A stretch of DNA of 64,000 nt, from assembly GCA_047495785.1 (NCBI GenBank), contig JBLDXI010000004.1, positions 2,666,001-2,730,000 on the forward strand. Direction: 5' to 3'. Under the pieces are notes generated by a model, which saw nothing but the letters and a program-made list of their open reading frames with translations, was not told where the DNA came from and did not search any database. The DNA comes from Lepidodermella squamata. Lineage: Eukaryota > Animalia > Gastrotricha. Shown one piece after another: positions 5,956 to 64,000 of the stretch (positions are counted from its first letter, which is position 1; every line of letters starts with the position of its first letter). A program made the translations under genes and the position numbers.

Positions 5956-8751
5956 ATGGCTACAGTTCTTCGCTTTGTAATTATTTTGAGTTTTATTGGA
6001 GCTGCTCACCCGCAAGAGTACAGGCGCTGCTTTTCACGCCTCGATGACTCCTTTGCAGGCTGTAAGGCGGCGTGCTTAGTGCTGGATGAAGCCCAGGCAA
6101 GATCTTTCGCGCGATTAACATCTTGAAACTGATTTGTGCCCTCAATTTAGCTGGGATTAGCTTTACCATCACTTGCAAGCTGCAAAGCCGGCGTGAGTAT
6201 TTCGAAAAAATTGATTTAAGGCAAACTATTTTGCATTCGTGCCATAGGCGGCTCGGAGCTGTTTCAACTTCAAAACCATCAACATGCGGTGCATCCCGCG
6301 TAACCTAGGCTGTGATAAAAATGATGAAGTTATGGTTCGTCCCATAATTACTCATAATTTAGAGGAATCAATTTGTTCTTTTACTAATAGACCGCTGAAT
6401 ACCTCGGCGACCAATTCGAATCGCAGTACAATCTATGCAGATCTACGATCAAACATTTCTTGGTGAGGCGCTTTATTTTCCCCAGAAATTTCAAGCGTTT
6501 GTTTTTTGTGTTTTGAAGAACACCCAGGCGAAGCTTTGCGACAACAATGGCCGGCGGACTTGTGTTCCGGCGAATGGGCCGTGTCCGAATAACGGGGCAA
6601 GTATTTCCCAGCCCTAAAATCAGTCCTAATTAATTTTCTTTCACTCAGAATTTGGTGAGCACCCATAACACATTGCGTCTCTGTATGGCTCAAGCAAACA
6701 GTGGGTTTTTCGTTTTTCCATTTTCCTATTTTTTATGAAAAAAAAACTTTCGCGCAATAGTCGTCCGAAATAATGCCGATTTTCAGCCGCACCAGCGATG
6801 CTTTCTGCAGAATGACCGTTCCTTTGTTGGCTGCCAATCGACGCCGTGTAATTCTACTTCAATGACCCAGGTAAAACTGCTGTGAGAATGTGTGTAGTGA
6901 GAATGGATTAAAACTTCCATTTCAAAATTTAGTCATACAGTGGCAGGACCTACATGGACAAAATTCACTGCATTGCTGGGGTTAGTTTCAATTTCTTTCG
7001 AGGATTTCTTGTAATTTCAAGGATTTTAGCCCGCTGCTCTTTGCTCGACGTCTGACGGCTCGGTTTGTCGCAACAATTGCCCAACTCCAATGACGACGGT
7101 CCGTTTGTTGTACAAGGAGTGTAATAAATTAAAACTTGTACCAGATTTTCTGACTCCGAATTGAATGAAATTGCATATTTGAATTTGCAAATATCAAATT
7201 TCTTAAATTTAAGAATTATTTGAATGAATATTGTGCAACGAATCGCGTGACTGTGAAAGTTTCTAGCCACTGTATTGTAGTGCGGAAATTACCAGGGTGA
7301 TTCAGAAATCAGAAAATATTCGTAGTCCCGATTTATTTTTATGTTTCTCGAATTTTCGAGGTCATTGTAGTCCACGCAGCCCCAATTTATTAAAGTCTAC
7401 TCATAGTAAAAGGCAATTGTGGCCTAAAATTATATCACTAACACGATTTCATCAATTTCATCCGCAACTTAGGCGTGCCGAATTTCGGTTTTAAATTTAA
7501 TTTTCTCGAATTATTTACATTTATTTTCCTCGGTGAAAATTGTCTAAAATGGGAAAGGATTTCGAATGATTTTCAAATCCTGAGATGCTTATAATTTAGG
7601 GGCTGCAAAACATACAGGAAATTTTCGGCGAAACTAGGAAATTTCGGCAAGGAAACTCATTTTAAAACGCTTGAAAACGCTTGGAAAAAGCCAGGGAAAA
7701 CTAGGAAGCTGCTATGAAAACGCTAGGAAAACAAAGTTGTTGGCAATTCCGACTTGCCCGATTTGCTTTAAGATCAATGATCTATACTACAAGCATTAGG
7801 AAGTAATAAAACTGTTATTGGGGTTTCTTTTCAGCTTCCAAAAATTACCCTAGAACATGTCTCGCACTGCTAGAAATTTTTTATTTTTGACCAATCGCGA
7901 TAATTGCTTCAAGGCACATAATTATCTCCGCAACCTTGTTACATAGATAAACAAATTATACTGAAGCCTTTCGATTTGAGTCATAAAATTTATTTTTGAT
8001 TGATGAAGTTCATAGAGCTCATGGAACTAGCTGGCTTCATAAGGTCCGAAATTTTACGCCGATTAAATATGCGCCTACCCCTTTTCTCAACGGTTTAAAT
8101 ATTAGAAATTTCTCTGTCCATTGACAGGTTACGGTATTCAAAACGAAATCTGACTTTGCCAGCAATTACGCCGACTGCCTGAAGTCACAAGCTCCCCTAG
8201 CGTCGTAAGTATTTTCACGGTGTTGGAAAATCTGTAGAAATCGGCGTTTTTACAGATTTTACAAGTGCATCGCAGGTGGGGGGATTGAAACCTGCCGCTC
8301 GGATTGTTCGTCAGGCGAATACCGCTTCCCACCCAATCTCACATTTTCTAGCGAGTCTAGCTGTAGGAACGCAACGAAGCAATTTTTCATCGTTGGATCT
8401 AGCGATAAGTCACTGCCGAGAAACGACGCTAAAGCCTCGTGTGTGAGCAGTAACGGCCGTCTCGGAATGCCGAAGACAAGTGGTGAGATGGTTGCGGCTA
8501 GGCAAGTTCTATCGGACAGGTTCGGAGCTGCTACCGGTTGGTCGGGCGCTTGGATCGGCATAACAAGTGAACCAGCCTGGGAGGACGGCGCGTCCTATGC
8601 CTTCGTCCGGGGTGATTGGACTCACTGGGAATCGGGCAACTGCGTCAAATTCTTGCTTTCTGATGGTGGGAAGTTCATGTTTGGACAGGAGAATTGCCAA
8701 TCGACGAGCATCAAATATGCGGTCTGTGAAACTTACATATCATCTGAATAG
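5956..8751 (+). CDS. Secreted protein A: signal peptide, six 4-Cys repeats, C-terminal C-type-lectin-like domain (about 11 exons)
   Basis: ATG 5956 MATVLRFVIILSFIGAAHP; spliced repeats such as YRRCFSRLDDSFAGCKAACLVLDEAQ|LGLALPSLASCKAG; last exon has AWIGIT...WEDG...AVCE. Exon layout mirrors 30391-33906 and needs two GC donors. Confidence 0.8.
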
Positions 8752-10363: not shown

Positions 10364-13300
10364 TTACAAAAACTGCTCGCATAAGGCGTTTTGCAATGCG
10401 TAATCACAAACTTCAGTTTTGAAGTAATATCCAGGTGGGTTGACATTATAGAAAATAAGACCGCAGCCTTCGGGTAACGACGACCACTGCTCTCCGAAAT
10501 TGAAATCGGAGCCATCGTCCCATTTGAGAACTCCTAACTGCTGAGTGAAACCGATCCAGAAGTATTTTCTCGGATACTGGGTTATCACTTGCAAGGCCGT
10601 GGTCACCTCGGCTGCTGACCTAATCGTGGCTATCGTAGCATTGTTTTGGACACATTTCGACGCGGCGGTAGTTTTGCCGCCCGAAATTTCCACCGCCAAG
10701 TACTTCTTAACCACAGCCTTGCAAGTGTTCTCGTCCACATAGGTGACACTGGCCGGAATTCGAACCTGAATTGCCGCATTGCAGCCTGTCGACTCGGTTA
10801 CACAGTGAACCGTCCCGTCAGTTTTGTCGACGCAGCGGAAATATGACTAGAAAAGAACGTAACATTAAATTCGAAAACTATTATTGAACAGAAATGATAC
10901 ACACTAAAAACTAGTTTTTTGAAATGTATCCTCAGTTTTTTGATTGGAAGAATTCTGACACTTTGGTGGAATTTTTTCAAAATGTTGTTCTAAAAGCTTC
11001 AAAAAAGGCCGAAAACACAAATAAAAGGGCCCTAGCGAAAAAACAGCTCAATTCCGGGCCCATATTAGTTCCGTCCGGTCCCCAAGCGCCTTTAGCATCT
11101 TTGCGCGCGGTTTTAAATTTGTTAAAAATAATTCAACTTATGCGCAAAAGCCAAGTCCTGATTTTTAACAAATTTAAAACCGCGCGCAAAGATGCTATAG
11201 GGTTACTTTCAAATATCGCGGCGGTTTTTATACCAAAACATAATTCAGACAATTCTCTATCGATTGAATATGGGGTTCTCGCTCGAAAAAATTAAAATAA
11301 AAAAGTTTTACGTGCACCTAAAATTTTGCGCGCGAGTTGAGAGCGCGCGCACTCGCTTCTCAAAAGTTAGGATGTGCGGTAACCGTTTTTTCGTTCATTT
11401 TTCACGCGAGAAATCCATATATATTCTATAGAGAATTTTCTGAACTTTCTTTTTCTTTTAAAAACCGCCTAAATAATCAAAACTTGCCCTTTGACTTAAC
11501 CGCACGCGGCCTTGAAATTTCTAAAAATTTTGACTTATGCGCGTTTTGCGCGTTTTGCGCTGGTCCACTTTTACCCTCCGACTGGACGGAACTAATATGG
11601 GCCCGGAATTGAGCGAAAAAACATCTCCACGATGGTTAATGTTATGTTCATGTGTAGCTCAATTATATGATGTTCATGCAAGAACATAAACCGCACATCG
11701 AAAGCAGAAATAATATGAAATCATGTTACAGCCACACATCGGAAAAAAGTCACAAATCGCTAATTATTTTTCATTATGGATTACTAATTTCGACACGCTG
11801 TTCACGAATATCAAGTTTGTTTTTCACCCAGGATCACCTGAGAGGTCGTTTCGGCAAGGTGAAATTAAAAAACTACCTGGGTGAAGCCGCGCAATCTTCT
11901 GCGTAAAGCCGTTTTTTGTGAATTATGAAGAACAAAAAAAACTTGTTCTATTTTCTACGATTCACAAGAAAACAGTTTTAATGAGAGTTTATCGTAATCA
12001 AATTTCATGAGCGGAAGTGGCGCAGTGCAGAGAGAGGCGGGCTGTAAGCTAAGGGCTGGTTGGTTCGACAAGGTTCGAATCCCGATGCCGTCTGCACTTT
12101 TTTGGTTGATGATAATGTGATGTTTATATTATAAAATTTGATAAAAACATTACATTTTTTTATGTTTTTGCTGCACACGTTCACGCGCGTTTCTGTCAAG
12201 TTCTTGCACGATCTCACACGGTCTTGCAGGTTCCTGCCAGAGACTTTGATTTGATTTGATTTGATTGTGATTTGATTTGATTTAGGCCATTTTTTGATGA
12301 TTTGATTTACTGATGATTTGATTTAGAAAATTTCATGATGATTTGATTTGATTAAAATTTAGCCCACTTGATTTACTGCTGATTTATAAAAATCAGAACT
12401 CTCGGAGTTCCCCCAGTAACTAAACATGAGAACTCACATTTGCCTTGAAAACAACTGTTTTCCAAAGCCTGGAGCTATTCATGCCCTTGCATACTCATTC
12501 TGCCAAAACCAAGCATGAAATTTGAAAGAATCCCCAGAAATTTACCTTAATACTCATGTTTCCCTATGCGAAAGATTTGATTTGATTTGATTTAAACGGG
12601 CCTGGTGATTTGATTTGATTGATTTACTATCGATTTTTGGGGAATTTGATTTGAAATGATTGATTTACAAAGACCTGTGATTTACTGAATAAATCAAATC
12701 AAATCAAATCAAAGTCACTGGTTCCTGCGTAGACGTCAACGTGGACGTGTGTGGCTGGTGTGATGAACCAACATGGAAATGTCAAATTCACGCAGGACTT
12801 TTGTATGAGGGCACGAATGCCACAGGGCCTTAAAGCAGTTGTTGCCTGGTTTGCCTAATGGAAAATCTGTCACTGTTTGAGATACAGACTCACAGGAGCA
12901 CTATAATCTTGAAAGCAAACTCACAAGAGGCTTGATACACGATGCGAGATTGGGATACACCGTTGTTCCAGTAACCTGTAGATGAAAAATAGTCAAGAAT
13001 CACAAAACGAACTAACCGAGACGGACTCCAAAGACTACCACTTTGAAAACTGGAAAATCACTCACCCAGTTATTGGGGCAGGAGTACGGGTCCGGAACAC
13101 AGGTCTTGATGACGTTGTTCGACGTACAGCGCCTGAATGCCAAAGTCTGCAATGAAAAAATCATATCAGCATGCTAAATATTCAACGTTTCCAAGTGTCC
13201 TCACCTCAAATGCAGCTTTCTTTTTCTCGCATTCGTTGAGGTTGAATTTCAAGCTCAACGTGGGCTTTTGGTCGTCGAACCAGAACGTCTGGTTATTATT

Positions 13301-13767
13301 AGAAAATAAAAAAAAATAAGGATTTTGATTCAATCTTTGATTCATTGAATCGGAATGATGCTAACATTCATATCACCCGGGTTGTTGCATCCGATGTACC
13401 CGGGAACGCAAAACGGGGTAAGAGCCGCGTATTTGTAGCACATTCGGGCATTCTAAATCAGAATAAAATTATAAAAAAATGTAGCCGATCAATTAACAGA
13501 CCCCAGTGTTGCAGACGCCGACTGTTGAGAAAATCCCACCCCACTGTCGATAAAGGGACACTTGAAGAACTTGAATTAGAAATTGAATTCGAGGAAAACC
13601 TGAAATTCGCGGAGTGGATCACAGCCATTGACAGCTTGTACGCAACTTGTGAATAGGCTGCTCCGCTTCGAGAAGCACCGTACCCAGTTCAACGGCTTAC
13701 TGCCCCAAGCCAGTTCGCTCGAAGCCAGCATCAGCACCAACAGCACAGCAAAGTAATAAACAGTCAT
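10364..13767 (-). CDS. Secreted protein B: signal peptide, four 4-Cys repeats, C-type-lectin-like domain
   Basis: ATG 13767 MTVYYFAVLLVLMLASSELAWG; six small exons down to ~12925, then a phase-0 join (inferred) to the last exon SYFRCVDKTDGTVHC...FWIGF...LKWDDGS...ALCE. Confidence 0.75.
11046..11614. mobile_element. Mutator-like MITE
   Basis: ~34 bp TIR GCTCAATTCCGGGCCCATATTAGTTCCGTCC; 9-bp TSD GAAAAAACA on both sides. Confidence 0.88.
12011..12103 (+). pseudogene. Degenerate tRNA-like sequence (pseudo-tRNA or SINE head)
   Basis: A box TGGCGCAGTG, B box GGTTCGAATCC, 6/7 acceptor stem and a downstream T-run; anticodon and T stems do not pair. Confidence 0.6.
12238..12720. mobile_element. hAT-like MITE with (GATTT)n subterminal repeats
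   Basis: TIR CAG(A/T)GACTTTGATTTGATTTG; perfect 8-bp TSD GTTCCTGC. Confidence 0.92.
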
Positions 13768-16122
13768 TTGTGGAGTCACTAAAAAGTCGAGCGCTGATTG
13801 GTTAATTGAGCGTTGCTAAGACTCCGGAATGAAAAATTTCTGCCGTGCTATCCACAAATAAATAATTTATTTGTTACGTTAGAAATGGTTTGGGTTGGGT
13901 TAGGGTTGAAGACTGGGTCTTAAACAGTGGCGTAACCCGTAACCAGCTGGTTGTTTTGGTTGGTCAAACAACTACATACCAAGATGAAAACTCAAAAACC
14001 CCTCCCGCGGCCTAAAAAAGCCTCGCTAAAATTGCTTAAATGGGGAGGATATGTTTGCAAATTGCCAAAAATTGTATCGCTTCGCTCGAAGTCTCGATAT
14101 CGTTGATTGAAAATCGGCACTAGTCGGCCTTGAATTATCCTGGGAGAAATTCAAATTACATCCTCAGATCTATTTGGAACTGATTGGAATAAATTGGTAC
14201 GGAATTCAATGACGTTTAGTACTGAATTCAATCATTTAATTCGGTAATGATTCACTATTTCCCGTGAATGTAGTTAAATTTAGAGGATCAACAACATTCT
14301 CAAAACGAAATAGGGAAAGTGCTGTCGCTGTAAACAGCGTTAAATGTTGTTTTTCAAGTTGATTTGGCACGCGAACAGCTTACGGCCTTTTGTGAACAGC
14401 TAATACATTGAACCAGTTGAACCCTTTGAACTCGTCGCCGTCAACATCTGTGACCCTGGCGCGTGGCAACTCGAGCTCAAGCTCGACCTCGATTTTTCGA
14501 CATTTTTTGATAAAATAAAGACGTACATATCTGGAGCTTGTGTGAGAACATGACTCACTAATCTTTTTATTCTCTAGCTTGGAATATTAACTGCTATTAG
14601 CATAGCATAGCATAGCGATATCTTTATTACACCATTATTATTAGTCATTAAATATTAACAAAGATTTCAGTGCAAAGAAAATGAGTAGGCAAAATGATAA
14701 AATAAAAATCACTCGACGTACCCAGCGAGCTGTTGATTAAATTAACGTCGAGAGTGCCGAGCGTGGCGAGCGAAGTGAGCCTCAATTGTCACTTTTTCGC
14801 GAAATCATCGGTTGAAAATGCGATGATAATGCTTCGAATTAGAAAATCTTGGATCTTGGAAGAAGCTCACTAAAACGCAACTCAATGCTATAAGATTTAG
14901 TTCGCTTTTCTATAAAATTGTCATATTTCCTACACCCAATTTTGCCTGTTCACTTGAAGCGTTGAATGTTGATTTTATTACATCTGATGAGCGTGTGCTG
15001 CCTCCATTCATGAGCATCGTACACAGCTAGCACAGATAGCTTTATCACTTTGAGTAATCAGATTTCAGGCCCAGTGATGAATTTTACAGATTTCAGAACG
15101 GATTTCCGGGTCAATATATCAGAAAATGGGCCGAAATTTCTCATTTCTGTTTCCATTGTTTGTCTTCGCCTTGTTGATCTCACGGCATATCAAACGCTTA
15201 TCGACTGTCGCACAATCGCACGCTTATCCTTAACGTGATCAACAATCGAAAATCGATAACACAAAAAAGGCGCTGCTTCTTTTTTGCTTCTAGTGTCGCG
15301 TGTTTCAGTTCTCGATAACAAAACAAAATATGGCCTGTTATCGGCTTGTCAACACCCACCATGAAGCTCGTGAGTTTACGCTAATGAATGAATGATTGTT
15401 CGGGCACGTGCCGATACGAAAAATAAAAATAAGTCTTTTTTCACACACAAATACATTTTTAGTTTATCAAACATTAAATATTTATGAAACCGAACTTTAC
15501 TAGAGTTCCGCTGACCACGGAACAAAGCTGGTCTGACACTGGTCGTTTCTCACAGATGTATCCCATAGAACATAGAACAGGATAATTTCAGTTTCTTTGG
15601 CAAGGCAGGGTTGCTATAGATGATAGTTTATTAATTGATTGAGAAATCGTTGTGGTTTTCATTTTTATTTTTTTTCTTGATTGTGGGCTCTTCACCTGTC
15701 CCCTTCACTCTTTTTCTCAGGTAGCAAAGTTGATTAGGACGCATGCCCGCTCGACGCCCTTACAGTATTTTTCCCGAAGTTTTAGTTTACCTTGTATACA
15801 TATTTGGTTACCTAAAATTTCATTTTTAGCAAAAGATTGATCGGTTTGAGGTTATGGTTAGGTGACAGGCTTATGTTTAAGGTTAGCTTTAGGGTTAGGT
15901 TTTTAATAAGTCTCGGCTTTTGGGTAACTTCGAATTGTAGGGTTCAGTACTTTGTCAGTAGCTGTTTTTAACCAGAACCGAGTGATTATATGTATTCATT
16001 TGCGTTATGCAGCTTAAATTTTGTGACAGATTGTGTATGAATGCAATTTGAAAATTAATAATACTATCAAATTTATTAAATAAATAATTGTCACATTAAT
16101 TCTAGATTTTTCAAGATAAAAC

Positions 16123-19100
16123 ATGCTTTTTTCGAGACATTTCTTCGTAGAGATGGCTTGCATCATCGCCATTATCGCTCAAGGCGTAATGAATGTAAGC
16201 TTACAATTTAGACAATTTTTGCATTTGTTTATTTATTTGTTAATTCATTGGCTCCACAGGATGAAAAGGCCGATGCCGAGCAGGTGCGACAAATCCTATA
16301 CAAGCTCTATTCTCAGAAGCGACTGGATGGTGGCCGAGAAATAGTGAGATATTTCACGCATATTCTTAGAAATAACCGAATAGAATAAATATAAATAACC
16401 GAAAAGCCCATCGGAATTTGATGATAAGCGGTACCACAAAAGGGAATTTTCCGCCCAGTCAAATTTCTCGTAATTTTCAAGATTTATTCTTAAACTAAGT
16501 TCCGTTAGCATTGTGAAACGTGTCAGAAAAAAGACAGAGGCTAGGTGTGGTGACAACTGATCAAGCTTCTATTTAACATGCGACAACTCGGCACGACTAT
16601 TAGGCAAACTCAATTCGACACTAAAAATTTCAAGGACCGAAAACGACAATTCGGCAAAACGATAACTCGACATGATGAAAATCACCAATATGGGTAAACG
16701 ACGACTCGGCAGGAATACATTTCTGCCACTTCTGCCACTGCCGAGTAGTATTTTTGCCGAGTTGTCGTTTTCGATCGAATAAAAATTATTGTCGAATTGA
16801 CACTTGCTGAATTGTCGCTGCCGAATTTCCCAGTTGTTGTTGATCAATTGTCATACATAGGACTGAATCTTTGGGGCCATTTCACTCTAAACCCTTTCAC
16901 GACCGTAAAGAGGATTTACTTGAATAGAAGAGGAATTCGGACTTCGCCTGACCCGTTATTCAAAGAAGGGGTGCTCTTATCAAGGTCTCGTACATTTAAA
17001 AAGCTAAAAACGGCACGATTTGAGGCGCTAATTCTTTTGGATCGTAAACAGCCCTACCTATATGAAAGAGCTTCAGGGAGAACAGGGAGAGGACTTTTAT
17101 TCAAATGCTTTTCACCCAAAATTATTGTCTGGTTTCGCCACTGTCGATAAAATTAAGGATTGATGAATCAGAATTCAACCGATAGCTTGCTAGCCGAAAC
17201 TCGTATTCGAATTCAGTTTTCAAATCCTGTATCGCCTGGGCGCCTAGTCCTCAAAATTGCAGTGCGCTGGAAATTCGATATCCCCGAATACCTATTAGTA
17301 AATTGGTAATCTAGGAATCATCGAATAGCAAAATCAAAGCTACAGTAATCGGCCGACCAATCATTTATAGCCTAGGCCCATTCTTGCTCCGACGACGGAG
17401 TCCCTTAGCTTTCAAATACTATCGTTAAGATGCGCCGTACTCACTCTTCGCTCAAAGATGAAACAGATTTCGAACAAATTATCGAAAAATCATATTTTTT
17501 GGCCGAAAGTGTATTTCGGGTGGGAGTAGTCATTTATTGGTTTAATAATTTGCCTGAAAATATTTAAAATGCCTTTTCACTTGTGTTCCGTTGCCAATCA
17601 CAGTTGCCTATTGAGAAATTCGAGGTGCCGAAGACGAAGGCCGGGCTGAGGCCGAGCGTGGCGCAATCTATGTACGACAAATTCATGGCTAGGCACCACA
17701 GCAGCAAAGCAGATGCAACCGACGACAGCGAAAGCGTGCCCAATCTCAGATCAGCATCGTCTAGAGCCTGGCAGCTGCCGTTGCCTGTTTATATTAGCGA
17801 GGATTATGATCGGAGTGAGTTGACACGATGTTGCTGTAACAGGATTCTAACTAAACACCTGTAACTTGATAGCTCCCGAATTCTATGCCAAGTTCATCGT
17901 TGCTCTCGACCTTTACAAGCAACACACGTGCTTCGATTACAACCTAACAAACGATTGGGTTGTTCTATTGGTTAACCAAGACGTGTAAGTTAGCTATGAT
18001 GCACAATCATTTGGTGATTTTGCTCTTTTCCAGCGTAACATTCACGCCAGGCCACTTCGCGGGAAATACCATGACGAATGCATACATAGATGTACCTATT
18101 ACAGTGAGTACCGTCGGAATAATTTGTCATTAGAAATCAGCCGTTGCTCCCAAGCTTTAAAAATTGTAACAAGATGTAACAATTTGGGTGGCCAAATTGA
18201 AGAGTGGCACCCTGTAGAGACCAAATTGAAGTCTATGATCTACACGACTTACACGCCTAAACGGTTTTCATGAAATTATAATAAATTTGATATTCATTAG
18301 AATTGAAATTAAAACATTGCATACGTAATTTATTAATAATTATTTGCCTGTAATTGGAAAAAATGAATTTGGAATCGATTTTTCAGCTAAGAACCGACAT
18401 TGCAGGAAATACGTTTCATTTTATTGCTAGAAAGCTAAGCCCTTATTTATTCCGAAACCATTTTCTCAATTTCATGTGCATACAGGGGGAGGGCCAGTGA
18501 CTATCGAAGCAAGTTATTCATTTATTTTGACAGGCTATTCATCGCATTTTGGCCTTTGACATCGGCGTGGTAAGTCAAGCTCTATTCTTTTATTCGCTCA
18601 TAAATGTGGACGTTACAGGAAGAGGAGGCCACTCGCCCTGATCGGGATACGTACTTGACGGCGACGGGATAGTAAATAATGTTCGCCCAAACAACTTTTT
18701 CATATTTATTTGTATGATAGCGATTGGAAGAAAGTTATTCCAGCCGAGCAGTTCGAAGGTTACGGTGTACCCTTCGACTACGCGTCCGCAACAATGGTAC
18801 ATCCACTTGTAAACGATGGCGAAGTGAAACCGAAGGACTGGCGCTACGTTGGCGCCATGAATGCCCCGCTGCCGTCTTTCAACAACTTTAAAGTTATCAA
18901 CATGTTTTACGACTGCCTAGGTGAGATAAATCAAGCTACATTTTATGCGTCTCGTTTCAAATCACGATTCTTCCTTCTGGCAGCTCTCTGCAGTGGGCCG
19001 GCTCCGAACTGTACCCACGGCGGCTATCGGGATCCCAAGAATTGCGCCATCTGCAAATGCCCGCCCGGTTTCGGCGGTCCCTTCTGCGACGATTTGCCTG

Positions 19101-28570: not shown

Positions 28571-28928
28571 GGCACCAAATCGACGCTGAAAATTTCGGTC
28601 TTTTGTTAATTTACTAGCAAAACAACAGGCGCCAATCGCCAATGTATACTCACGGTGAAATTCTCAAATTTCGGATCACTGGTACCCGCGTCGACTGCAC
28701 TGAGGGGTTCTGAAATCTCAACTGAAGACACGTCCCTGAGGTCGGCGCACGTAAGGTTCGTCATCAACATGGTCGAATTGATTAGAAAGCCCAGATAAAA
28801 TGTGACTATATGAAAAGGTTAGCATATATCAGATTCATGCACTGGCAAGAACACGTGTAACATGGGTCGAGTCGAATTAGTTCACTCCTTGGGGTGATGG
28901 GTTACTCCCCGAAGGTTTTACTGTTGTT

Positions 28929-30390: not shown

Positions 30391-33300
30391 ATGGTTTTGT
30401 ATCAGTGTGCTATATTGCTAGCCTTACTGCTGGCGTCAAGCAACAATGCCTTCGGCAAACAGCTGAACTGGGTTCGATGCTTCTCGCAGTTCAGCAACAG
30501 ATTCACCAGCTGCGTACTAGCCGCGGACGGCTGTGATCCACTCACCGAGTATCAGGTTTTTCTCAACGAAATTAAATTGAAGAGCAAATTAATCGACATG
30601 TCTCTCTATTTATAGTGGGGCTCAATTTTCCGAACAACCGGGGTCTGCAATACCGGAGTCTGTTAATTTTTATGCTAAATTCATTTTAATTTGCTCTGCT
30701 TTATCTATAGAATGCCAGGATGTGCTACAAATACGAGGCTATTACCCCGTTTTGCGTACCTGGAAACGTTGGATGTAACAATCCTGGTGATATGAATGTA
30801 AGCCTCATTTCAATAACCAACAACTTTTTAATGGTGACTACCAGTGTGCGAAGTAGGATCCAGGAGCTGAGGTGATTTCTAGGACTTGTTTTCTAAGACC
30901 CAGCCGAAGAAACCAAAGGGTCCCCCTGTGGTTTTTTCAGCCTTCCTCTGATTTGAGTCCCGGAGCTGGGGTGTCGCGACACCTCAGCACCTCTGTACAG
31001 GGCGTTCGCGTAATAATTAATAATACTCTAGGTGAGCTAAAAATAGCTAAAAATAAGCTCAAATGAATGCAAAAAGTAGCAAAGCTATTTTTAGAAGAGT
31101 ATTATTACGCGAACACCCTGTACTTCGCACCCTGACACCTTCGCATTTTCACCTGACTTCGGGTGAAAATGCCATTCCTCTCCACTCTTTCCAAAAAATC
31201 AGAAAATCTAAATCTAAATATCGCCGGAATCAAAAATTCCATGTCGAGAGTTTTCTCTAAATTCTAAATTCTAAATTTGAATTTAGAATTTAGAATTTAG
31301 AGAAAACTCTCGACATGGAATTTTTGATCAATTAAAAAAAGTTTCCGCACGAGCCATACCTTGGAAGAGGAAAGGCATTTCTGCTCACCAGTTGTAGCCA
31401 TATTTTCCCCGATTTTTGATAAATTATCCATGAGAGAACACAAGATGTACCTGATAGTAATAGATAGAGGGTCGCTTCCAGCTTCAAGAATTTCGTAGGA
31501 GAAATGCAAAATTTTTGTAAGGGACATCTCTGGCTTGGATTTCTAATTTTTGAAATTATCTCTCCTTTGAGCATTCCGTTAAGCACTGTTGAGCACTCCG
31601 TTGAGCAGCGTTGTGCACATTGAGCACAAAATGAGACATTTCTTTAGGCACGTTGTGCTTCTTTGAACAGCCTTCGAGCACTCTTTGTGCGGCTCTTGAG
31701 CATCGCGTTCAGCACCAGTCGTCAATGAATTAAAAAAAAACAGTCGCGGGCAGGAATTGAACCAGTGATCACTACTCTCAAGCCCGCAATCAAATCCATT
31801 GCGCCGCTGGCTCCTCAAATGGATACTATCAAAATCGACTTATTAATAATTCCATCTGTTAACAATTTTGCAACTTTGGCAGTTTTTTGTAATTGCAACC
31901 GAGCCATTTGCAAATGAAATAATATAATTGGGGAAAAAATATTGAAAAAACAACCAGTCAGGGGCGGGAATCGAACCAGTGATCACTGCCCTCACACTCA
32001 ATTTTGTCATCTTTGGAGTGCTCAATGATAACCTGTTATCCTGTTGCGCACAAGTTGAGCACTTTCGATATGTTCCGGCTGACGTTGAGCATAAATTGCG
32101 CACAAATTGAGCACCCATTGAGCAATCATTGAGCATTTTGAGCACAAGTTGTGCAATTGAGCAAAAGTGCTCAAAGGAGAGATATTATTATTTATAATTT
32201 TGATGGGCGGATATGGTGGTCTATAAAGTGGTCGCGTGCTGTACTTTTCGCAAATTTAGCTCGAATAAATTAACTATGGATAATGTATAGAGGTTGGTTT
32301 CCTGTTTCCTCTCTGTTGCAGGTTGTTGTTGTGATTATTGGTATTTTTATCGTTTTCATTTTTTAGACGTTTTGGTTCGACGATCAGAAGCCGACGTTGA
32401 GCTTGAAATACAACCTAAACGAATGCGAGAAACGGAAAGCAGTATTCGAGGTTGGTATTCAGGAAATAATGCCATTGCGTATTATGCTTTAACTTTTTAT
32501 CATTCCAGACTTCGAAATTCAGGCGCTGCACGTCGAACAACGTTATCATCACCTGTGTTCCTGACCCGTACACCTGCCCCAACAACTGGGTGAGCGGCTT
32601 GGAAACAGTTTATGTGTTTCTTTGTAACGCTGTAACGCTGATTCTTGCTTTTCCAGGTAACTGAATCGACTCTTTATTCAACTCTTGCTTCATGCACCAA
32701 TGGATCAGGTTCGCGCTTTGCGTGAAAAATATCGCCACGATTTTTAAAAAGTAACGCGTAATCTTTCATTTCAGTCGTAGTTCCGGTCAACGAAAAGCCG
32801 CATATTCGGTGCTTTGATTCTACGAGCAAAAGGTTCAACGACTGCCGACCGCAAAGCTCCGGTTGTTTTGCTGGCAATGAGACACAGCAGTACTCGACCA
32901 AAGTTTATATCAACCGTGCAGCTTGCCTGCTCGGAGTAAGTTTTACTTCTATTTTAGCAATTGATTATTCTCGTTTACTCTCGTTTGACAGAATGCCGTT
33001 TCGTGCAAGGATTCATCCAATCGACTTTCTTGCTACGCAGCTTGTCCTCATGATCAAACTAAGGTAGCGCTCAGCCAAGAGCACGGTTTTCGCTGGTGCC
33101 AACTGTTTTTCTTCAACAGGATAAGCTGTTCTCGAACTTGGGGACTTTTCAGCTGAACCACGACAATTGCGTTAACGATATAACGCCCTATGTGAGTTTA
33201 TTTCGAGTAAAGGTTTCGTAGACATATGTTGAAAGTTGAAAGAGGGCAAATGGTTTCTGTCATAAATTTCGGGTCATTCCGGGGTTTGAAAACACTGTTA

Positions 33301-33906
33301 TGCCATTTTCGGTTTTGGGGTATGTAACGTTGTTTTTCAATTATGCTTTATGCGCCACTTTCACCGCCTGTCCTTGATATGATAGGTACATTAGGGATTT
33401 CATATTTTCGATAGATTGCTACCCATCGGTGCTTGCGAACTGCCGACGGTTCAGTAACTTGCCGACCGAGCTCAAATGGCTGTGACGCCAACACTGAGAT
33501 TCGCTTTCCTGCAAATGTTACTTTCAGCGGCGAATGGCAGTGCCAACACGCTCGAAGGATTGTGTTCATGGTTAATTACACCGACAGTTATTTAAATTAC
33601 ACATCTGCAGCCGCAAAGTGCTCGCAACTGGATAGCATCTTAGCAACTGGTAAAACGGCTGCCGAAATAGCCCAGGCTCACAGCGTTGGACCCGCACACA
33701 ATAGTGCATGGATGGGTCTTGATCCATATTCTGGCGTTCTCAAATGGTCCGACGGTTCGGCATTCACATACGTATATCCAGACCTTATTGTATCAGAATA
33801 CTATCCAGATCGATGCGGGAACCTGCTGGCAGGTGCTCCTAGAATGGTGTTCAATACGTGCGACAGCGGTTTGATGTACGCAATGTGCGAAACCTACGCT
33901 GAATGA
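30391..33906 (+). CDS. Secreted protein C: signal peptide, six 4-Cys repeats, C-type-lectin-like domain (about 10 exons)
   Basis: MVLYQCAILLALLLASSNNAFG; exons WVRCFSQ..., NARMCYKY..., TFWFDDQK..., FRRCTSNN..., HIRCFDST..., NAVSCKDS..., THRCLRTA..., then AWMGL...LKWSDGS...AMCE; all GT-AG and in frame. Confidence 0.85.
30842..31135. mobile_element. hAT-like MITE carrying a nested TA-flanked Tc1/mariner-like MITE (30998-31120)
   Basis: Outer element matches 26871-27036; inner TIR CAGGGCGTTCGCGTAATAAT, with a second copy at 50604-50720. Confidence 0.85.
31229..31328. repeat. ~100 bp near-perfect palindrome
   Basis: ATCAAAAATTCCATGTCGAGAGTTTTCTCTAAATTCTAAATTC... immediately followed by its reverse complement. 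Confidence 0.9.
31559..32182. mobile_element. TA-flanked MITE with TTGAGCA subterminal repeats and two internal tRNA-like cassettes on the minus strand
   Basis: TIR TCTCTCCTTTGAGCA; B-box-like GGTTCAATTCC and GGTTCGATTCC followed by T-runs at ~31735-31812 and ~31945-32000. Confidence 0.75.
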
Positions 33907-34175
33907 ATGGCAAGTGTTCGATGCTGCCGTTAGCTTTTGAACTACCTGTCGCCTATTTACATGTTGATGATACGTGATGAGCTGCTGCAACAAAATATCA
34001 GTAGAATAAAAGAGACAGGTTCGCAAGACCATGCAATTCTTTTTTAAGCGTTTTAAACAATAATTTTTTATTTTTGGTTTACATTCAAACTCAGTTCCCT
34101 AGCAAAGAAAATTGTTTATTAGCTGAAGATAAAAATATTTTATGGCTATTTATCTCGTGGATTATTAGCGGATAA

Positions 34176-34322
34176 TTGGGACCCGTCAAGCCATTTCGGC
34201 CCTATCTCATCTTCATAGTCATTTGAAATGGGGTGTTGCGCAATAAACAATCATGCTTCAGCTGTGGCCTTTCAAATGACTGTGAAGATAAGATAGGGCC
34301 GAAATCGCTTGACGGGTCTCAA
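34176..34322. mobile_element. Short MITE whose TIRs match the inner ends of the 21919-22932 arms
   Basis: TTGGGACCCGTCAAGCCATTTCGGCCCTATCT and its reverse complement. Confidence 0.8.
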
Positions 34323-35389: not shown

Positions 35390-36052
35390 CTTGATGACGT
35401 TGTTCGACGTACAGCGCCTGAATGCCAAAGTCTGCAATGAAAAAATCATATCAGCATGCTAAATATTCAACGTTTCCAAGTGTCCTCACCTCAAATGCAG
35501 CTTTCTTTTTCTCGCATTCGTTGAGGTTGAATTTCAAGCTCAACGTGGGCTTTTGGTCGTCGAACCAGAACGTCTGGTTATTATTAGAAAATAAAAAAAA
35601 ATAAGGATTTTGATTCAATCTTTGATTCATTGAATCGGAATGATGCTAACATTCATATCACCCGGGTTGTTGCATCCGATGTACCCGGGAACGCAAAACG
35701 GGGTAAGAGCCGCGTATTTGTAGCACATTCGGGCATTCTAAATCAGAATAAAATTATAAAAAAATGTAGCCGATCAATTAACAGACCCCAGTGTTGCAGA
35801 CGCCGACTGTTGAGAAAATCCCACCCCACTGTCGATAAAGGGACACTTGAAGAACTTGAATTAGAAATTGAATTCGAGGAAAACCTGAAATTCGCGGAGT
35901 GGATCACAGCCATTGACAGCTTGTACGCAACTTGTGAATAGGCTGCTCCGCTTCGAGAAGCACCGTACCCAGTTCAACGGCTTACTGCCCCAAGCCAGTT
36001 CGCTCGAAGCCAGCATCAGCACCAACAGCACAGCAAAGTAATAAACAGTCAT
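35390..36052 (-). pseudogene. 3'-truncated copy of secreted protein B (exons 1-4 and part of exon 5)
   Basis: Identical to 13105-13767 but breaks at 35390 inside exon 5; no downstream exons seen. Confidence 0.85.
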
Positions 36053-39000
36053 TTGTGGAGTCACTAAAAAGTCGAGCGCTGATTGGTTAATTGAGCGTTG
36101 CTAAGACTCCGGAATGAAAAATTTCTGCCGTGCTATCCACAAATAAATAATTTATTTGTTACGTTAGAAATGGTTTGGGTTGGGTTAGGGTTGAAGACTG
36201 GGTCTTAAACAGTGGCGTAACCCGTAACCAGCTGGTTGTTTTGGTTGGTCAAACAACTACATACCAAGATGAAAACTCAAAAACCCCTCCCGCGGCCTAA
36301 AAAAGCCTCGCTAAAATTGCTTAAATGGGGAGGATATGTTTGCAAATTGCCAAAAATTGTATCGCTTCGCTCGAAGTCTCGATATCGTTGATTGAAAATC
36401 GGCACTAGTCGGCCTTGAATTATCCTGGGAGAAATTCAAATTACATCCTCAGATCTATTTGGAACTGATTGGAATAAATTGGTACGGAATTCAATGACGT
36501 TTAGTACTGAATTCAATCATTTAATTCGGTAATGATTCACTATTTCCCGTGAATGTAGTTAAATTTAGAGGATCAACAACATTCTCAAAACGAAATAGGG
36601 AAAGTGCTGTCGCTGTAAACAGCGTTAAATGTTGTTTTTCAAGTTGATTTGGCACGCGAACAGCTTACGGCCTTTTGTGAACAGCTAATACATTGAACCA
36701 GTTGAACCCTTTGAACTCGTCGCCGTCAACATCTGTGACCCTGGCGCGTGGCAACTCGAGCTCAAGCTCGACCTCGATTTTTCGACATTTTTTGATAAAA
36801 TAAAGACGTACATATCTGGAGCTTGTGTGAGAACATGACTCACTAATCTTTTTATTCTCTAGCTTGGAATATTAACTGCTATCAGCATAGCATAGCATAG
36901 CGATATCTTTATTACACCATTATTATTAGTCATTAAATATTAACAAAGATTTCAGTGCAAAGAAAATGAGTAGGCAAAATGATAAAATAAAAATCACTCG
37001 ACGTACCCAGCGAGCTGTTGAATAAATTAACGTCGAGAGTGCCGAGCGTGGCGAGCGAAGTGAGCCTCAATTGTCACTTTTTCGCGAAATCATCGGTTGA
37101 AAATGCGATGATAATGCTTCGAATTAGAAAATCTTGGATCTTGGAAGAAGCTCACTAAAACGCAACTCAATGCTATAAGATTTAGTTCGCTTTTCTATAA
37201 AATTGTCATATTTCCTACACCCAATTTTGCCTGTTCACTTGAAGCGTTGAATGTTGATTTTATTACATCTGATGAGCGTGTGCTGCCTCCATTCATGAGC
37301 ATCGTACACAGCTAGCACAGATAGCTTTATCACTTTGAGTAATCAGATTTCAGGCCCAGTGATGAATTTTACAGATTTCAGAACGGATTTCCGGGTCAAT
37401 ATATCAGAAAATGGGCCGAAATTTCTCATTTCTGTTTCCATTGTTTGTCTTCGCCTTGTTGATCTCACGGCATATCAAACGCTTATCGACTGTCGCACAA
37501 TCGCACGCTTATCCTTAACGTGATCAACAATCGAAAATCGATAACACAAAAAAGGCGCTGCTTCTTTTTTGCTTCTAGTGTCGCGTGTTTCAGTTCTCGA
37601 TAACAAAACAAAATATGGCCTGTTATCGGCTTGTCAACACCCACCATGAAGCTCGTGAGTTTACGCTAATGAATGAATGATTGTTCGGGCACGTGCCGAT
37701 ACGAAAAATAAAAATAAGTCTTTTTTCACACACAAATACATTTTTAGTTTATCAAACATTAAATATTTATGAAACCGAACTTTACTAGAGTTCCGCTGAC
37801 CACGGAACAAAGCTGGTCTGACACTGGTCGTTTCTCACAGATGTATCCCATAGAACATAGAACAGGATAATTTCAGTTTCTTTGGCAAGGCAGGGTTGCT
37901 ATAGATGATAGTTTATTAATTGATTGAGAAATCGTTGTGGTTTTCATTTTTATTTTTTTTCTTGATTGTGGGCTCTTCACCTGTCCCCTTCACTCTTTTT
38001 CTCAGGTAGCAAAGTTGATTAGGACGCATGCCCGCTCGACGCCCTTACAGTATTTTTCCCGAAGTTTTAGTTTACCTTGTATACATATTTGGTTACCTAA
38101 AATTTCATTTTTAGCAAAAGATTGATCGGTTTGAGGTTATGGTTAGGTGACAGGCTTATGTTTAAGGTTAGCTTTAGGGTTAGGTTTTTAATAAGTCTCG
38201 GCTTTTGGGTAACTTCGAATTGTAGGGTTCAGTACTTTGTCAGTAGCTGTTTTTAACCAGAACCGAGTGATTATATGTATTCATTTGCGTTATGCAGCTT
38301 AAATTTTGTGACAGATTGTGTATGAATGCAATTTGAAAATTAATAATACTATCAAATTTATTAAATAAATAATTGTCACATTAATTCTAGATTTTTCAAG
38401 ATAAAACATGCTTTTTTCGAGACATTTCTTCGTAGAGATGGCTTGCATCATCGCCATTATCGCTCAAGGCGTAATGAATGTAAGCTTACAATTTAGACAA
38501 TTTTTGCATTTGTTTATTTATTTGTTAATTCATTGGCTCCACAGGATGAAAAGGCCGATGCCGAGCAGGTGCGACAAATCCTATACAAGCTCTATTCTCA
38601 GAAGCGACTGGATGGTGGCCGAGAAATAGTGAGATATTTCACGCATATTCTTAGAAATAACCGAATAGAATAAATATAAATAACCGAAAAGCCCATCGGA
38701 ATTTGATGATAAGCGGTACCACAAAAGGGAATTTTCCGCCCAGTCAAATTTCTCGTAATTTTCAAGATTTATTCTTAAACTAAGTTCCGTTAGCATTGTG
38801 AAACGTGTCAGAAAAAAGACAGAGGCTAGGTGTGGTGACAACTGATCAAGCTTCTATTTAACATGCGACAACTCGGCACGACTATTAGGCAAACTCAATT
38901 CGACACTAAAAATTTCAAGGACCGAAAACGACAATTCGGCAAAACGATAACTCGACATGATGAAAATCACCAATATGGGTAAACGACGACTCGGCAGGAA

Positions 39001-40556
39001 TACATTTCTGCCACTTCTGCCACTGCCGAGTAGTATTTTTGCCGAGTTGTCGTTTTCGATCGAATAAAAATTATTGTCGAATTGACACTTGCTGAATTGT
39101 CGCTGCCGAATTTCCCAGTTGTCGTTGCTCAATTGTCATACAGCGGACTCAATCTTCGGGGCCATTTCACTCTAAACCCTTTCACGACCGTAAAGAGGAT
39201 TTAGGAATTCGGACTTCGCCTGACCCGTTATTCAAAGAAGGGGTGCTCTTATCAAGGTCTCGTACATTTAAAAAGCTAAAAACGGCACGATTTGAGGCGC
39301 TAATTCTTTTGGATCGTAAACAGCCCTACCTATATGAAAGAGCTTCAGGGAGAACAGGGAGAGGACTTTTATTCAAATGCTTTTCACCCAAAATTATTGT
39401 CTGGTTTCGCCACTGTCGATAAAATTAAGGATTGATGAATCAGAATTCAACCGATAGCTTGCTAGCCGAAACTCGTATTCGAATTCAGTTTTCAAATCCT
39501 GTATCGGCCTGGGCGCCTAGTCCTCAAAATTGCAGTGCGCTGGAAATTCGATATTCCCGAATACCTAAAAGTAAATTGGTAATCTATGAATCATCGAAAA
39601 ATCATCAAAATCAAAGCGACAGTAATCGGCCGACCAATCATTTATAGCCTAGGCCCATTCTTGCTCCGACGATGGAGTCCCTTAGCTTTCAAATACTATC
39701 GTTAAGATGAGCCGTACTCACTCTTCGCTGAAAGATGAAACAGATTTCGCACAAATTATCGAAAATCATATTTTTGGCCGTAAGTGTATGTCGAGTCATT
39801 TTTCGGTTTATTCATTTTCCCGAAAATATTTGAAATGCCCTTTCACTTGTGTTTCCGTTGCAAATCACAGTTGCCTATTGAGAAATTCGAGGTGCCGAAG
39901 ACAAAAGCCGGGCTGAGTCCGAGCGAGGCGCAATCTATGTACGACACATTCATGGCCAAGTATCACAGAAGCAAACCAGCGGCAACCGACGAAGGCGAAA
40001 GCGTGCCCAATCTCAACGCAGCATCGTCTAGAGCCTGGCGGCTGCCCTTGGCTATTAATTTCAAGGAGGATCGTGTTCAATGTGAGTTGATCCGCTGTTG
40101 CTGCGTTAAAAGATTCTAACTGTAAATTGACAGCCGCTGAATTTAAACCTAAGTTCATCGCTGCTCTCGACCTTTACAAGCAACACACGTGCTTCGATTA
40201 CAACCTAACAAACGAAAGGATTGATCTAGAGGTTAATGAAGACGTGTAAGTCGGCTATGATGCACAATCATTTAGTGATTTTGCTCTTTTCCAGCTACGC
40301 TTACACGCCAGGCCCCGCCGCAGGAAATTCTCAAGCATATGCATACATAGATGTACCGATTACAGTGAGTACCATCGACATTCTTTGTCATTAGAAATCA
40401 GCCGTTGCTCCCAAGCTTTAAAAATTGTAACAAGAGAGGTGAGCAAGGTGATTTATGAATTTATGAAAAATTATACCTCCTCTATTTTCAACTGATTAAA
40501 GGAAAGTTAAAACGTGTATTGCTGACGTTGATCAGGATAATTTCATTTCACGTGTT

Positions 40557-41008
40557 ATATATGTCGTATCGTATAAGGCAATCCCTCCAATTGCCGATAG
40601 AGATATCTCAATGAGCAATCCGATTTTACTTTTTGCCTGTTGTTTTCATCAGCCTTCAGGTTATTGAATTATAATCTATCACATATTAAAGTGCCCGAAT
40701 AGCTCTATCGATTGGTCAGCTAATATATTAATAAAGAGTTTAAATGGACCGAGAAGGCCAGAGGACAGTTACAGTGAAAATACGCTAGCTTTTTAAAAAC
40801 TCATAAAACACGCAGTTACGGAACAAGTTATTAGGGAAAATGGGCTCTGCTAGATAGGCGAAGGGCTATTCTGCTATCTTGCTTGGTTTCCAAATTAAAA
40901 AACCTGATTAAAATAACTGAAAATGACGTTGGGAACAATTCGGATTGCTCTTTGAGATATCTCAATCGGCTATTGGAAGAAATTGCCTTATACGATACGA
41001 CATATATA
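40557..41008. mobile_element. MITE with ~70 bp imperfect TIRs
   Basis: TATATATGTCGTATCGTATAAGGCAAT ... ATTGCCTTATACGATACGACATATATA. Confidence 0.8.
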
Positions 41009-41506
41009 GGATACGGGTTGATTTGCTCGTCCGTTGATTCCCTCCTTTGTTGGCTTAATTAAGTTCCGTTAGGAAAACCTTGTTTTGTCAGCAACGACAC
41101 CTTCTAGAAGCTAAGTTATTAGCTAATTTAATTCAGAGTTAATGGGCGAATGAAGCTTATTTTACTAAAATGAAAGGCTAATATACATATTTTGATAGTC
41201 GCTTCTTGGCATCAGCGCTTGCGGCCAACATTTTAACAAAACAGAAGTGCAATTTTGCATTAAACTTGAAAGAAATTTCAATATTCCACATATTTCAAAT
41301 GCTACGGCGAGAAAAATGGTGAATTCGGAAGCTCAGATATCCGAGGTCGTTGGAAGTATTAGGAAGTTGTGGTCTTCAGTCGCAAGGCTTTTAAAGTACA
41401 ATTCAACTGAGCATTTCAAAATCGAAAATGCATATATTACCAGAGCAAGACTGACGCTGAAAGGCAAAGTCTTACCGAAACGTAACCTGAGATATGATTT
41501 AATGCT

Positions 41507-41989
41507 CGTTAGCGTTTCGGTATAACTCTCCATTTGACGGTAACTCCATCTCGTCATTGTTCTCTAGTTGCGGTAAATAGTTTACCGTAAACAGCACTAC
41601 ACTGCGACACTAAGTCGTAAAATACTCGCGTGCGGTAAAATTAATTTCTCTGCGGTAATTTCAGCTCATATTATCTTGTAGGAACAGTAGGAATTACAAG
41701 CATATTATGGGGGAATAGAAATGGAGTTGGAACTGCGCTCAGGTTATATGATGGTGTGCGCGCGCAGCTTAGAATACAGCGTGTTACGCAACCGCTGTAG
41801 CGCATTGCTGCGAGCCGCAAGCCACAAGCTTGGGCCGCAAGTGCTTCTGCGGTAAAAATAACACCGCGTGCGGTAAAAATTAACTTACACGGCGCCGTTA
41901 GTTTTACTGCACGAGCATTAAGTAACCTGGTTTGCGTACTGCGGTAAAATACTTACCGTCAAATGGAGACTTATACCGAAACGCTAACG
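41507..41989. mobile_element. MITE with ~35 bp TIRs and GCGGTAAAA subterminal repeats
   Basis: CGTTAGCGTTTCGGTATAA.TCTCCATTTGACGGTAA and its reverse complement; possible 4-bp TSD TGCT. Confidence 0.8.
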
Positions 41990-44607
41990 TGCTGAATAAA
42001 TCTGAGAATGGCGATTTTCATTAGCCCAGTGGCTATCGGAACAATTTATTCATTATTTTGATAGGCAATTCATCGCATTTTGGCCTTTGCCATCGGCGTG
42101 GTAAGTCAAGCTCCATTCCTTTATTCGCTCATAAATTTGGACATTACAGGAAGAGGAGTTCACTCGCCCTGATCGGGACACGTACTTGACCGTGACAGCA
42201 GAATAGTAAATATTGTTTGCTTATTTGTTTGCTTACTCATTTTTATTTGTATTATAGCAATTGGATAAAGAAAATTATTCCAGCCGAGAAGTTCGAAGGT
42301 TATGGTGTACCTTTCGACTACGCGTCCGCAACAATGATACATCCGCTCGTAAACGGAGGCGACGTTGAACCGAAGGACTGGCGCTATGTTGGTGCCATGA
42401 ATCCCCCGCTGCCATCTTTCAACAACTTCAAAATTATTAACATGTTTTACGACTGCCTAGGTGAGATTAATCGAGCTTTTACGTGTCACGTTTCACAGCA
42501 CAATCTTTCCAGCTAACTGCAGTGGGCCTGCTCCGAACTGCACCCATGGCGGCTACCGGGATCCCAAGAATTGCGCCATCTGCAAATGCCCGCCCGGTTT
42601 CGGCGGCCCCTTCTGCGACGATTTGCCTGTATTTCCTGGTGAAACTTGCGGCGGTGTGATCTACCTGGAGCCTGGAGTCTCGCAATTCATCGAATCTCCT
42701 AATTATCCTAACAGTTACCCGATCGGCAGTACGTGTTCATGGCGAGTCATCAGCAGCCAGGTGACACCTTGTTGCCTACTTGAACCTTAAATTTTCAACC
42801 GAATTACAGCCTGGCATAGTGTTTGGTTTTGACGGCAAACCCGATCTCACCGTTGGAGTGGGTAAGCACCGATAAAACTAATACTTATTGTTGAAAGTGA
42901 AGTTCTTTAATTCGGGTCATTGATTGGAAAGATTCGCATGCTGATGGGCTAACAGCTGGCCAATCGGAGTGTATAATCTTTTCATAAACCCAAAAACACT
43001 AAAATAATTTACCGTTTTTTTAAAAGATTAAAATTATTCTGATTCTGCTATAACGCAGTAAATGATGGTTACACAAGAAGCACCGAAAGCTGTTTCGATT
43101 ACGTCGAATTTCGCAACCCCGTCGATGGTACTCAGCCTTACTTGGTACAATGCTACGGTGGAGGAGTCATGCGATATCCCTATAACACCGTCTCCTGGTA
43201 ATGATTTCTTATTCAAGGCTCTCATCTTTAAATCTGCACGAATGTACCATATCAGTTCAACCTCCTCCGGCTAAGGCATTTGGTCGATGCGTGGCGAGTT
43301 CGACGAACGAATATCAGGGCTGCAAAGCTAAGTGCTCCACTAGCGAATACTCGCTGAAAGGCAGCAAAACCTACACTCCTACGCGTTCATGCGAAATCGG
43401 GGTTAGAATTATTTACATTTGAAAATTCTAAAAAAATTGATTGCTGTCACAGTCGGCTAAAAAATGCGAGAAGGTTGTGCGAGGAGTTACCACCTACCGA
43501 TGCATTGGGAATGATATGAGTTGCGACAAAGCAGCTGGAGAGCGACAGGTTTAAACAGTTTTCTCCTGTTTTCGAAATTATTTTTCCATTTCCTCAAGTT
43601 GCAAGAATACAATGGCTATCGTTATTTCTCAAGAAATTTTCTGTCATGTCAACACTCCGACGGCATGGTTTGTTTCTATTTGATTCTCCGACATTGTGTT
43701 TCACTAATTTTCCGCAAATTAGACTTACGTCCGCTGCTTCAACATTCGAACGAAAGCATTCGCGGAATGCCGTAGAAAGGCTCTTGGCTGCCACCAGGAT
43801 GAAGTGAGTTTAAATCGTACTTCTCAAATCATTTTTACCGTCATTTTTCTAATACCCCAGTTCGCCCTTCCCTCAACAAACCAAGATCCCATCAGATCAC
43901 CAGGCCAGTGCTATGGTGGTCTTACAGTCTAATAGCCACATAAAGCCACACTTCTGGACTTGATTCGATGGCAACAGTTATCTTTATTGTAAAATGTTCA
44001 GCCATCACGTGATACCACGTTGATATTTAATATTGCCGGCCTTCCATGTTTAAAGCAGGCTTTTAGTTTTTCTTTTGAAAATGTTGATCGCTTAATAAAG
44101 TTATCATCGTTTCTGGCTTCCAAAGCTGCATGTGGAAACAAGCTAAACAGCTAGATTGCGTCAGGATAACAACAGTTACCATATTAGGTAGCGGGTTGAC
44201 GTTCCGCGTTGTTATCAGTTCCGCTTAGATGAACTACGCCGCGGTTTACTTGCATGTGAACAAATCCCTTGGCGATGGACGCTGAAAATGAATTTTTTTT
44301 TATTTGAAATAAGTATGCGCAAAACGTTTTGCCTCGCATACTAATGTGTTTACCCAATAAGCTTTTAGAATGGGTCAATTTTCAGACTTATTATCGTGCG
44401 ATAAGAAATCACATACAGTCAAAAGCATACAGACAATGTTATTTGGGACTCACGTGATGTTATATAGATCAAACTAATACCTTTTTCCAGACTTTGTTTA
44501 ACGAAAAGGGCAGAGCCAAAATAATTTCTCAGGACATCGGTGCAATATATTCAGCCTGAAAATGGAACTCTTTCATTCCACGTATCCAATTAAATATTTC
44601 CACAATC

Positions 44608-54002: not shown

Positions 54003-54013
54003 TCATTTCTATG

Positions 54014-63941: not shown

Positions 63942-64000
63942 CGTTTATCAAAAATTAGATATTTTCAAGTAAAATTCAACAGTCATAGGTTTGCTGGAAG

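Follow-up and report, generated by a model that had tools for sequence, protein, structure and literature searches.

A shared four-cysteine module in lectin-like genes and a zinc-less astacin-like gene of the gastrotrich Lepidodermella squamata

What do lectin-like proteins and a protease relative encoded side by side have in common? The question is raised by a stretch of 64,000 nucleotides from the gastrotrich Lepidodermella squamata (GenBank assembly GCA_047495785.1, contig JBLDXI010000004.1, positions 2,666,001 to 2,730,000, forward strand; hereafter the window, GC ~41%), in which three lectin-like genes (A, B, and C) lie among two astacin-like genes (Ast1 and Ast2). A sequence-only reading had proposed that all five are built on one unrecognized four-cysteine repeat. 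We conclude that this module is a real, undescribed, shuffled extracellular domain. The published assembly, obtained by multiple displacement amplification, comprises 122 Mb in 157 contigs at 43% GC (PMC11660948). We rebuilt the five genes exon by exon as open frames separated by introns with GT or GC and AG ends, mostly 49-67 nt long, and all coordinates are positions in the window. The locus is present in one run from 2024 and in one probable RNA run from 2015; X1 denotes a DNA run and X2 the run with a spliced contig. The RNA comparison covered the astacin-like genes only, the exon models of A, B, and C being predicted from sequence.

The module and its introns

We found 22 modules in the rebuilt exon models (A, six; B, four; C, six; Ast1 and Ast2, three each), and both these counts and the examples quoted in the sequence-only reading were recovered in the genes named there. 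Four cysteines lie within 33-46 residues of each module, in a domain of ~40-45 residues, with the spacing C-x7-11-C-x3-6-C-x15-26-C; the earlier spacing pattern stands in this form, but the arginine written into it directly before the first cysteine is present in 13 of the 22 modules only. With 5000 shuffled proteins per gene as the control, shuffles gave 0.2-0.35 patterns on average and three at most, and the numbers observed in A, B, and C exceed all 5000. The three patterns of Ast1 equal the shuffle maximum and rise above it (the maximum becoming two) once an arginine or lysine is demanded before Cys1. A six-frame scan of the window detected modules beyond the five genes only in B′, a duplicate of part of B.

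Homology beyond cysteine spacing between the lectin-gene and astacin-gene modules is supported by sequence profiles for two of the three astacin modules. Scored with a profile of the 16 modules from the lectin genes, modules 1 and 3 of Ast1 reached 20 bits, more than any of 1000 shuffles in which the cysteines were held fixed (p = 0.001), so that the cross-match by which the earlier proposal was to be judged holds for these two and not for module 2. The reverse profile, built from the astacin-gene modules, recovers A1, A6, C4, B1, and C1 at p < 0.01, and when each gene in turn is left out of the profile, 16 of the 19 modules are still recovered (p < 0.03).

The intron pattern agrees with the earlier observation that mostly phase-0 introns recur after Cys3 and Cys4. 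Among the 30 introns within or adjoining modules of A, B, C, and Ast1, 26 are in phase 0, three in phase 1, and one in phase 2. Where the first module of a block ends, a phase-0 intron falls between C4+3 and C1-4; phase-0 introns also lie 4-8 residues after Cys3, and phase-1 introns precede module 4 of both A and C and module 1 of Ast1; the lectin and astacin genes have intron positions in common. Six modules are contained whole within single exons. A triplet periodicity shows clearly at module positions 1 and 4 and partly at 3 and 6, but the sequences of 2 and 5 do not reveal it. Conserved intron positions, entry through a phase-1 intron, and the cross-matching profiles together bear out the proposal of an exon-shuffled domain, and the simplest history would be one in which three modules, as a block, became attached to the kringle exon via a phase-1 intron.

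Lectin-like heads and a degenerate astacin-like domain

The products of A, B, and C each have a hydrophobic signal-like start, then modules, then a C-type lectin-like domain; with signal peptides predicted and a membrane span absent, they are predicted to be secreted. All three heads match PF00059 (B, E 1e-8; C, E 2e-4; A, E 6e-4, slightly below the gathering score) and have the conserved cysteines and the WIG motif of such domains. A motif check found none of EPN, QPD, and WND in the lectin domains of the three genes, and classical calcium-dependent sugar binding is therefore unlikely on established knowledge. Modules 1-3 of B and C have diverged under purifying selection (dN/dS 0.19, dS 0.73). 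The long intron of B, examined for leftovers of modules 4-5, holds no remnant of them. B and Ast1 stand head-to-head, as had been noted before, with 2356 nt from ATG to ATG. The gene A model requires two GC-AG introns (6097-6150 and 6597-6648).

The motifs that define astacins of family M12A include HEXXHXXGXXH, and the kringle is listed among their accessory domains (PMC9848320). That zinc motif is absent from Ast1, where the corresponding region reads AIHRILAFDIGV|EEE, lacking a catalytic Glu and, whichever of the two registers is taken, having no more than one His; the exons of this region agree in length with the spliced contig. EXXRXDRD, which in the family follows the third His, is kept as EATRPDRD, and the Met-turn, FDYASATMVHP, retains its Met and lacks the Tyr ligand of the family motif SIMHY. 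Searched one exon at a time, Ast1 gave no match to PF01400; the label "astacin-like" thus rests on motifs and domain context. Judged by its sequence motifs, Ast1 most likely cannot bind zinc, and we propose that it is a non-enzymatic multidomain binder.

A 2307-nt contig in X2 matches the Ast1 model with 0 mismatches over 16291-21200, with exact offsets. It omits every modeled intron from 16343 on and covers the sequence from the pro-region to the last module exon, the signal exon lying outside it. Because this spliced contig fits the exon model, a single mRNA carries the dead protease domain together with the three modules, which confirms the Ast1 exons that it covers and supports the link between the repeat and a dead astacin-like protein drawn in the sequence-only reading. 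A candidate exon at 17430-17520, which would break the frame, was rejected, as the RNA joins 16343 to 17604. Paralogues of the dead astacin-kringle family are also expressed: X2 contains sequences that map partially to 17900-20280 at 85-95% identity. A 2023 review found no astacins in gastrotrichs (PMC9848320), and Ast1 documents for this phylum a transcribed pseudo-astacin whose tail is new.

Known families, predicted fold, and a second host

A Pfam search of 21 module exons (six whole modules) at E ≤ 10 returned no EGF, Kazal, ShK, TIL, PAN, CBM14, or other described cysteine module, in line with the earlier failure to match the first four of these by spacing. Sequence searches of the PDB gave no family, and a match to 9w4x (E = 8) was dismissed as chance. 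An ESM Atlas search by features returned no matching cluster, a word-index search with the last exon of C no match, scans of JGI metagenomes no match, and the literature no description of the module.

A profile of the module exons run against 1.84 billion proteins gave 42 matches. We rejected 41 of them as BspA-type leucine-rich repeats or other unrelated repeats without the four-cysteine pattern. The sole true relative, P0032, lies on ENA metagenome contigs (ERZ27333047/ERZ23486764) from a eukaryote with a compact genome and GT-AG introns of 55-71 nt, next to animal-like neighbors (Med23, CLPTM1, DHTKD1, LDLa, and a weak lectin match); a search with this Med23 yielded no close relative. The P0032 gene opens with a signal-like segment and encodes three modules in tandem plus part of another where the contig stops, with phase-0 introns after Cys3 and Cys4. 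A profile made from the window only scores its modules at 37, 26, and 8.5 bits (p = 0.001, 0.001, and 0.004). Pfam at E ≤ 0.01 contains no described cysteine module for P0032, and the word-index search with P0032 found only itself. Another gastrotrich is a plausible host. Since the module is found in a second animal, it is not species-specific; its description as lineage-specific is qualified by this second host. The description of the module as unrecognized stands against Pfam, the PDB, and the Atlas, qualified by a weak likeness in predicted topology to MbtH-like and Kunitz cores. An unrelated 68-aa exon (L001 5737-5940), with no Pfam match, separates modules 3 and 4 of the P0032 gene.

AlphaFold2 (AF2) modeled the single exon that holds module 6 of C at pLDDT 77-90, with strands at 3-8, 14-18, and 28-30 and a helix at 40-45, and gave the same secondary structure for Ast1 module 1 (mean pLDDT 76). 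In the predicted fold, a beta-hairpin is followed by a third, shorter strand and by a helix at the C-terminus, and two disulfides presumably stabilize the whole. Modeling of single modules, as the sequence-only reading had suggested, yielded a consistent predicted mini-fold, but neither Foldseek nor the Atlas gave a significant match to it. The best structural neighbors are MbtH-like proteins (Z 5.0, rmsd 1.5 Å over 41 residues; 6n8e Z 5.0, 9up2_B Z 4.5), followed by the FIM region of complement C6 (Z 2.8) and Kunitz domains (Z 2.0-2.7), all below the level at which the tool indicates more than a common arrangement (Z 8). The Atlas model of P0032 likewise resembles MbtH-like proteins (TM 0.44-0.47). 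These proteins (PF03621) differ from the module in being bacterial and cytoplasmic, in having no four-cysteine pattern, and in sharing 5-20% identity with it; the module gave no Pfam match to the family, and the conserved Trp/SLWP signature is absent from the alignment. With Z below 8, the likeness is probably only a common small arrangement.

The more durable of the alternatives is that the module is a truncated, re-wired derivative of Kunitz/BPTI (PF00014), retaining core residues ~16-54 with four cysteines, in which case the tails might bind proteases or act in the manner of inhibitors. Kunitz domains make up nine of the 12 VIA rows obtained with the Ast1 module; the hairpin, short strand, and C-terminal helix align to their residues 16-54 (rmsd ~2.7 Å over 33 residues), and the end motif of the module, T-[FY]-x-S-x-x-x-C, resembles the Kunitz helix cap. 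However, the Z scores are at background level and below that of the MbtH-like proteins, PF00014 matched no module exon at E ≤ 10, and the module has four cysteines rather than six in about 58 residues, with no N-terminal segment and no canonical loop, the reactive-site segment falling outside the aligned range. We therefore consider a Kunitz origin unlikely. As the module matches neither the Kunitz nor the MbtH-like family on these tests, we treat it as an undescribed family of simple topology.

Proposed role and evolution of the locus

We propose, with a probability of about 0.65, that the module is a disulfide-stabilized stalk or binding unit in a secreted repertoire with fast gene turnover, and that Ast1 acts as a non-catalytic multidomain binder by analogy with other pseudo-metallopeptidases, which function in protein interaction and scaffolding (PMC11266112). 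The module would have multiplied, partly in threes, and spread between genes by intron-mediated recombination. In A, B, and C, the module chain may form a stalk or multivalent binding rod holding a terminal lectin-fold head that lacks calcium and sugar motifs; in Ast1, the three-module block would have been added through a phase-1 intron to a zinc-less astacin-like-EGF-CUB-kringle protein. Such a repertoire might act in mucus, cuticle, or at the gut surface and bind proteins, glycans, or microbes.

Ast1 resembles M12A astacins with EGF-CUB tails in its signal peptide, pro-region, ExxRxDRD, Met-turn Met, EGF-like domain, and CUB domain, and differs from them in the absence of HExxHxxGxxH, the altered Met-turn, and a tail of three undescribed modules (PMC9848320). 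With ADAM11/22/23 it shares a zinc-less metzincin-type domain in a multidomain extracellular protein, but it is secreted rather than membrane-anchored, and astacin-derived (PMC11266112).

Several points weigh against our proposal. Ast1 module 2 is unmatched by the lectin-only profile (p = 0.57), and the middle modules A5, B2, C5, and Ast1-2 match weakly. The AF2 models have pTM of 0.46-0.47, and the two jobs are not independent since most of their alignment rows were in common. The astacin assignment of Ast1 is drawn from motifs and domain context, and the exons of A, B, and C are predictions made from sequence.

Lineage-restricted secreted mosaics are common in invertebrates, which makes the surprise moderate. 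Secreted C-type lectin-like mosaics of invertebrates combine a PF00059 head with N-terminal lineage-restricted cysteine modules, as in nematode clec proteins with CW/PAN-3 or CUB. A, B, and C resemble them in signal peptide, tandem small domains, terminal lectin fold, and tandem duplication and loss, and differ in a stalk module that belongs to no Pfam family and in heads that lack EPN, QPD, and WND. New here are the RNA proof of an astacin-module fusion, the tested cross-homology, the predicted fold, and the second host. Together they define a domain family that neither Pfam nor the PDB contains and offer a clean example of a young module spread by exon shuffling.

A stronger version, in line with the single extracellular system inferred in the sequence-only reading, would have the modules bind each other, so that lectin heads and dead astacins form one combinatorial system outside the cell, with the head-to-head promoter regulating them jointly. 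We regard it as doubtful and slightly less probable than a Kunitz origin. We hold in equally low regard its fullest form, a new extracellular domain family of disulfide-stabilized MbtH-like topology that occurs in at least two meiofaunal lineages and docks lectin-fold heads and dead astacins into one recognition or adhesion system. The shared module, the physical linkage, and the head-to-head arrangement of B and Ast1 point toward one system, as does the variability of the cleft region between Ast1 and Ast2. There, two exons of the astacin-like domain (17875-18103 vs. 40136-40364) change far more in amino acids than the rest (p = 3e-7), with pN of 0.14-0.26 against 0.06 in the 49-nt intron between them. 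However, 2.4 kb separate the ATGs of B and Ast1, in a genome that is dense in genes, and pN in the variable exons is not above pS (p = 0.51), so that relaxed constraint or conversion explains their divergence as well as selection does. That the lectin-gene and astacin-gene repeats are unrelated cysteine-rich look-alikes or a product of hand-splicing, as their shortness, ~24% mean identity, and the miss of Ast1 module 2 might suggest, is very improbable and largely refuted by the cysteine-fixed shuffles, the common intron positions, the RNA-confirmed Ast1 exons, and the six modules whole within exons.

Returning to the secreted repertoire that we favor, birth and death of genes are seen at the locus in B′ and Ast2 (Table 1). 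The CUB-kringle exon of Ast2 measures 139 nt against 486 in Ast1, and a 351-nt deletion with a frameshift lies upstream of its module exons; this deletion is seen in X1 and absent from X2. The five repeat-bearing genes of the sequence-only reading all contain modules, but because Ast2 is frameshifted before its own, the intact set is four genes with 19 modules. Between Ast1 and Ast2, dN/dS is 0.06 for EGF plus CUB and 0.43 for the modules, both pointing to purifying selection, 0.44 for the astacin-like domain, and 0.94 for the pro-region exon. The 3.7-kb near-identical block was duplicated or converted very recently, or else it is an artifact of amplification or assembly; contig depth (99 in the block, ~38 for Ast1-specific and ~81 for Ast2-type sequence) gives no copy number and does not decide its origin.

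Table 1. Features of the module locus, in window coordinates
Feature	Position	Strand	Description	Evidence
Gene A	5956..8751	+	signal peptide, 6 modules (6013-8376), atypical C-type lectin domain (~8419-8733); 11 exons; 418 aa	exon model, PF00059
Gene B	10364..13767	-	signal peptide, 4 modules, atypical C-type lectin domain; 7 exons; 331 aa	exon model, PF00059
3.7-kb block	13105..16830	.	5′ half of B, common upstream region, first two Ast exons; 99.9% identical to 35390-39120	
Ast1	16123..21091	+	signal peptide, pro-region, astacin-like domain without zinc site, EGF-like, CUB, kringle, 3 modules; 16 exons; 695 aa; intact, transcribed	exon model, spliced contig; Pfam for CUB, kringle
Ast1 degenerate zinc-binding region	18534..18671	+	two small exons; HExxHxxGxxH absent, ExxRxDRD retained	motif definition PMC9848320
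Ast1 kringle	20102..20323	+		PF00051 E 1e-14
Ast1 three-module tail	20399..21091	+	5 exons, entry via phase-1 intron	exon model, profiles, spliced contig, AF2
Gene C	30391..33906	+	signal peptide, 6 modules (30466-33552), atypical C-type lectin domain (~33592-33891); 10 exons; 435 aa	exon model, PF00059
B′	35390..36052	-	near-identical copy of B exons 1 to 4.5, ends inside exon 5	sequence identity
Ast2	38408..43932	+	broken Ast1 paralogue; kringle deleted, frameshift in exon 43059-43197; module exons 43256-43932 (3 segments) out of frame	

Elsewhere in the window, a small secreted gene with galaxin-like CC repeats occupies 44608-45100 (+; PF24748, E 3e-6), and two small cysteine-rich frames with CxxxC spacing, PAN/apple-like by eye and with no Pfam match, lie at 50353-50646 (-) and 52634-52891 (+). 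A LicD-family fragment is found at 61231-61581 (+; PF04991, E 2e-5), and intronless open reading frames (ORFs) with weak Pfam matches only occupy the window end (62361-63944, -). A LINE retroelement extends over 55579-59414 (+), with a zinc knuckle in ORF1 and endonuclease- and reverse-transcriptase-like regions in ORF2, and a reverse-transcriptase fragment is also present at 1-1007. Palindromic MITE-like insertions occur in both introns and intergenic sequence (11046-11614, 19447-19588, 31229-31328, 34176-34322, and 53382-54149).

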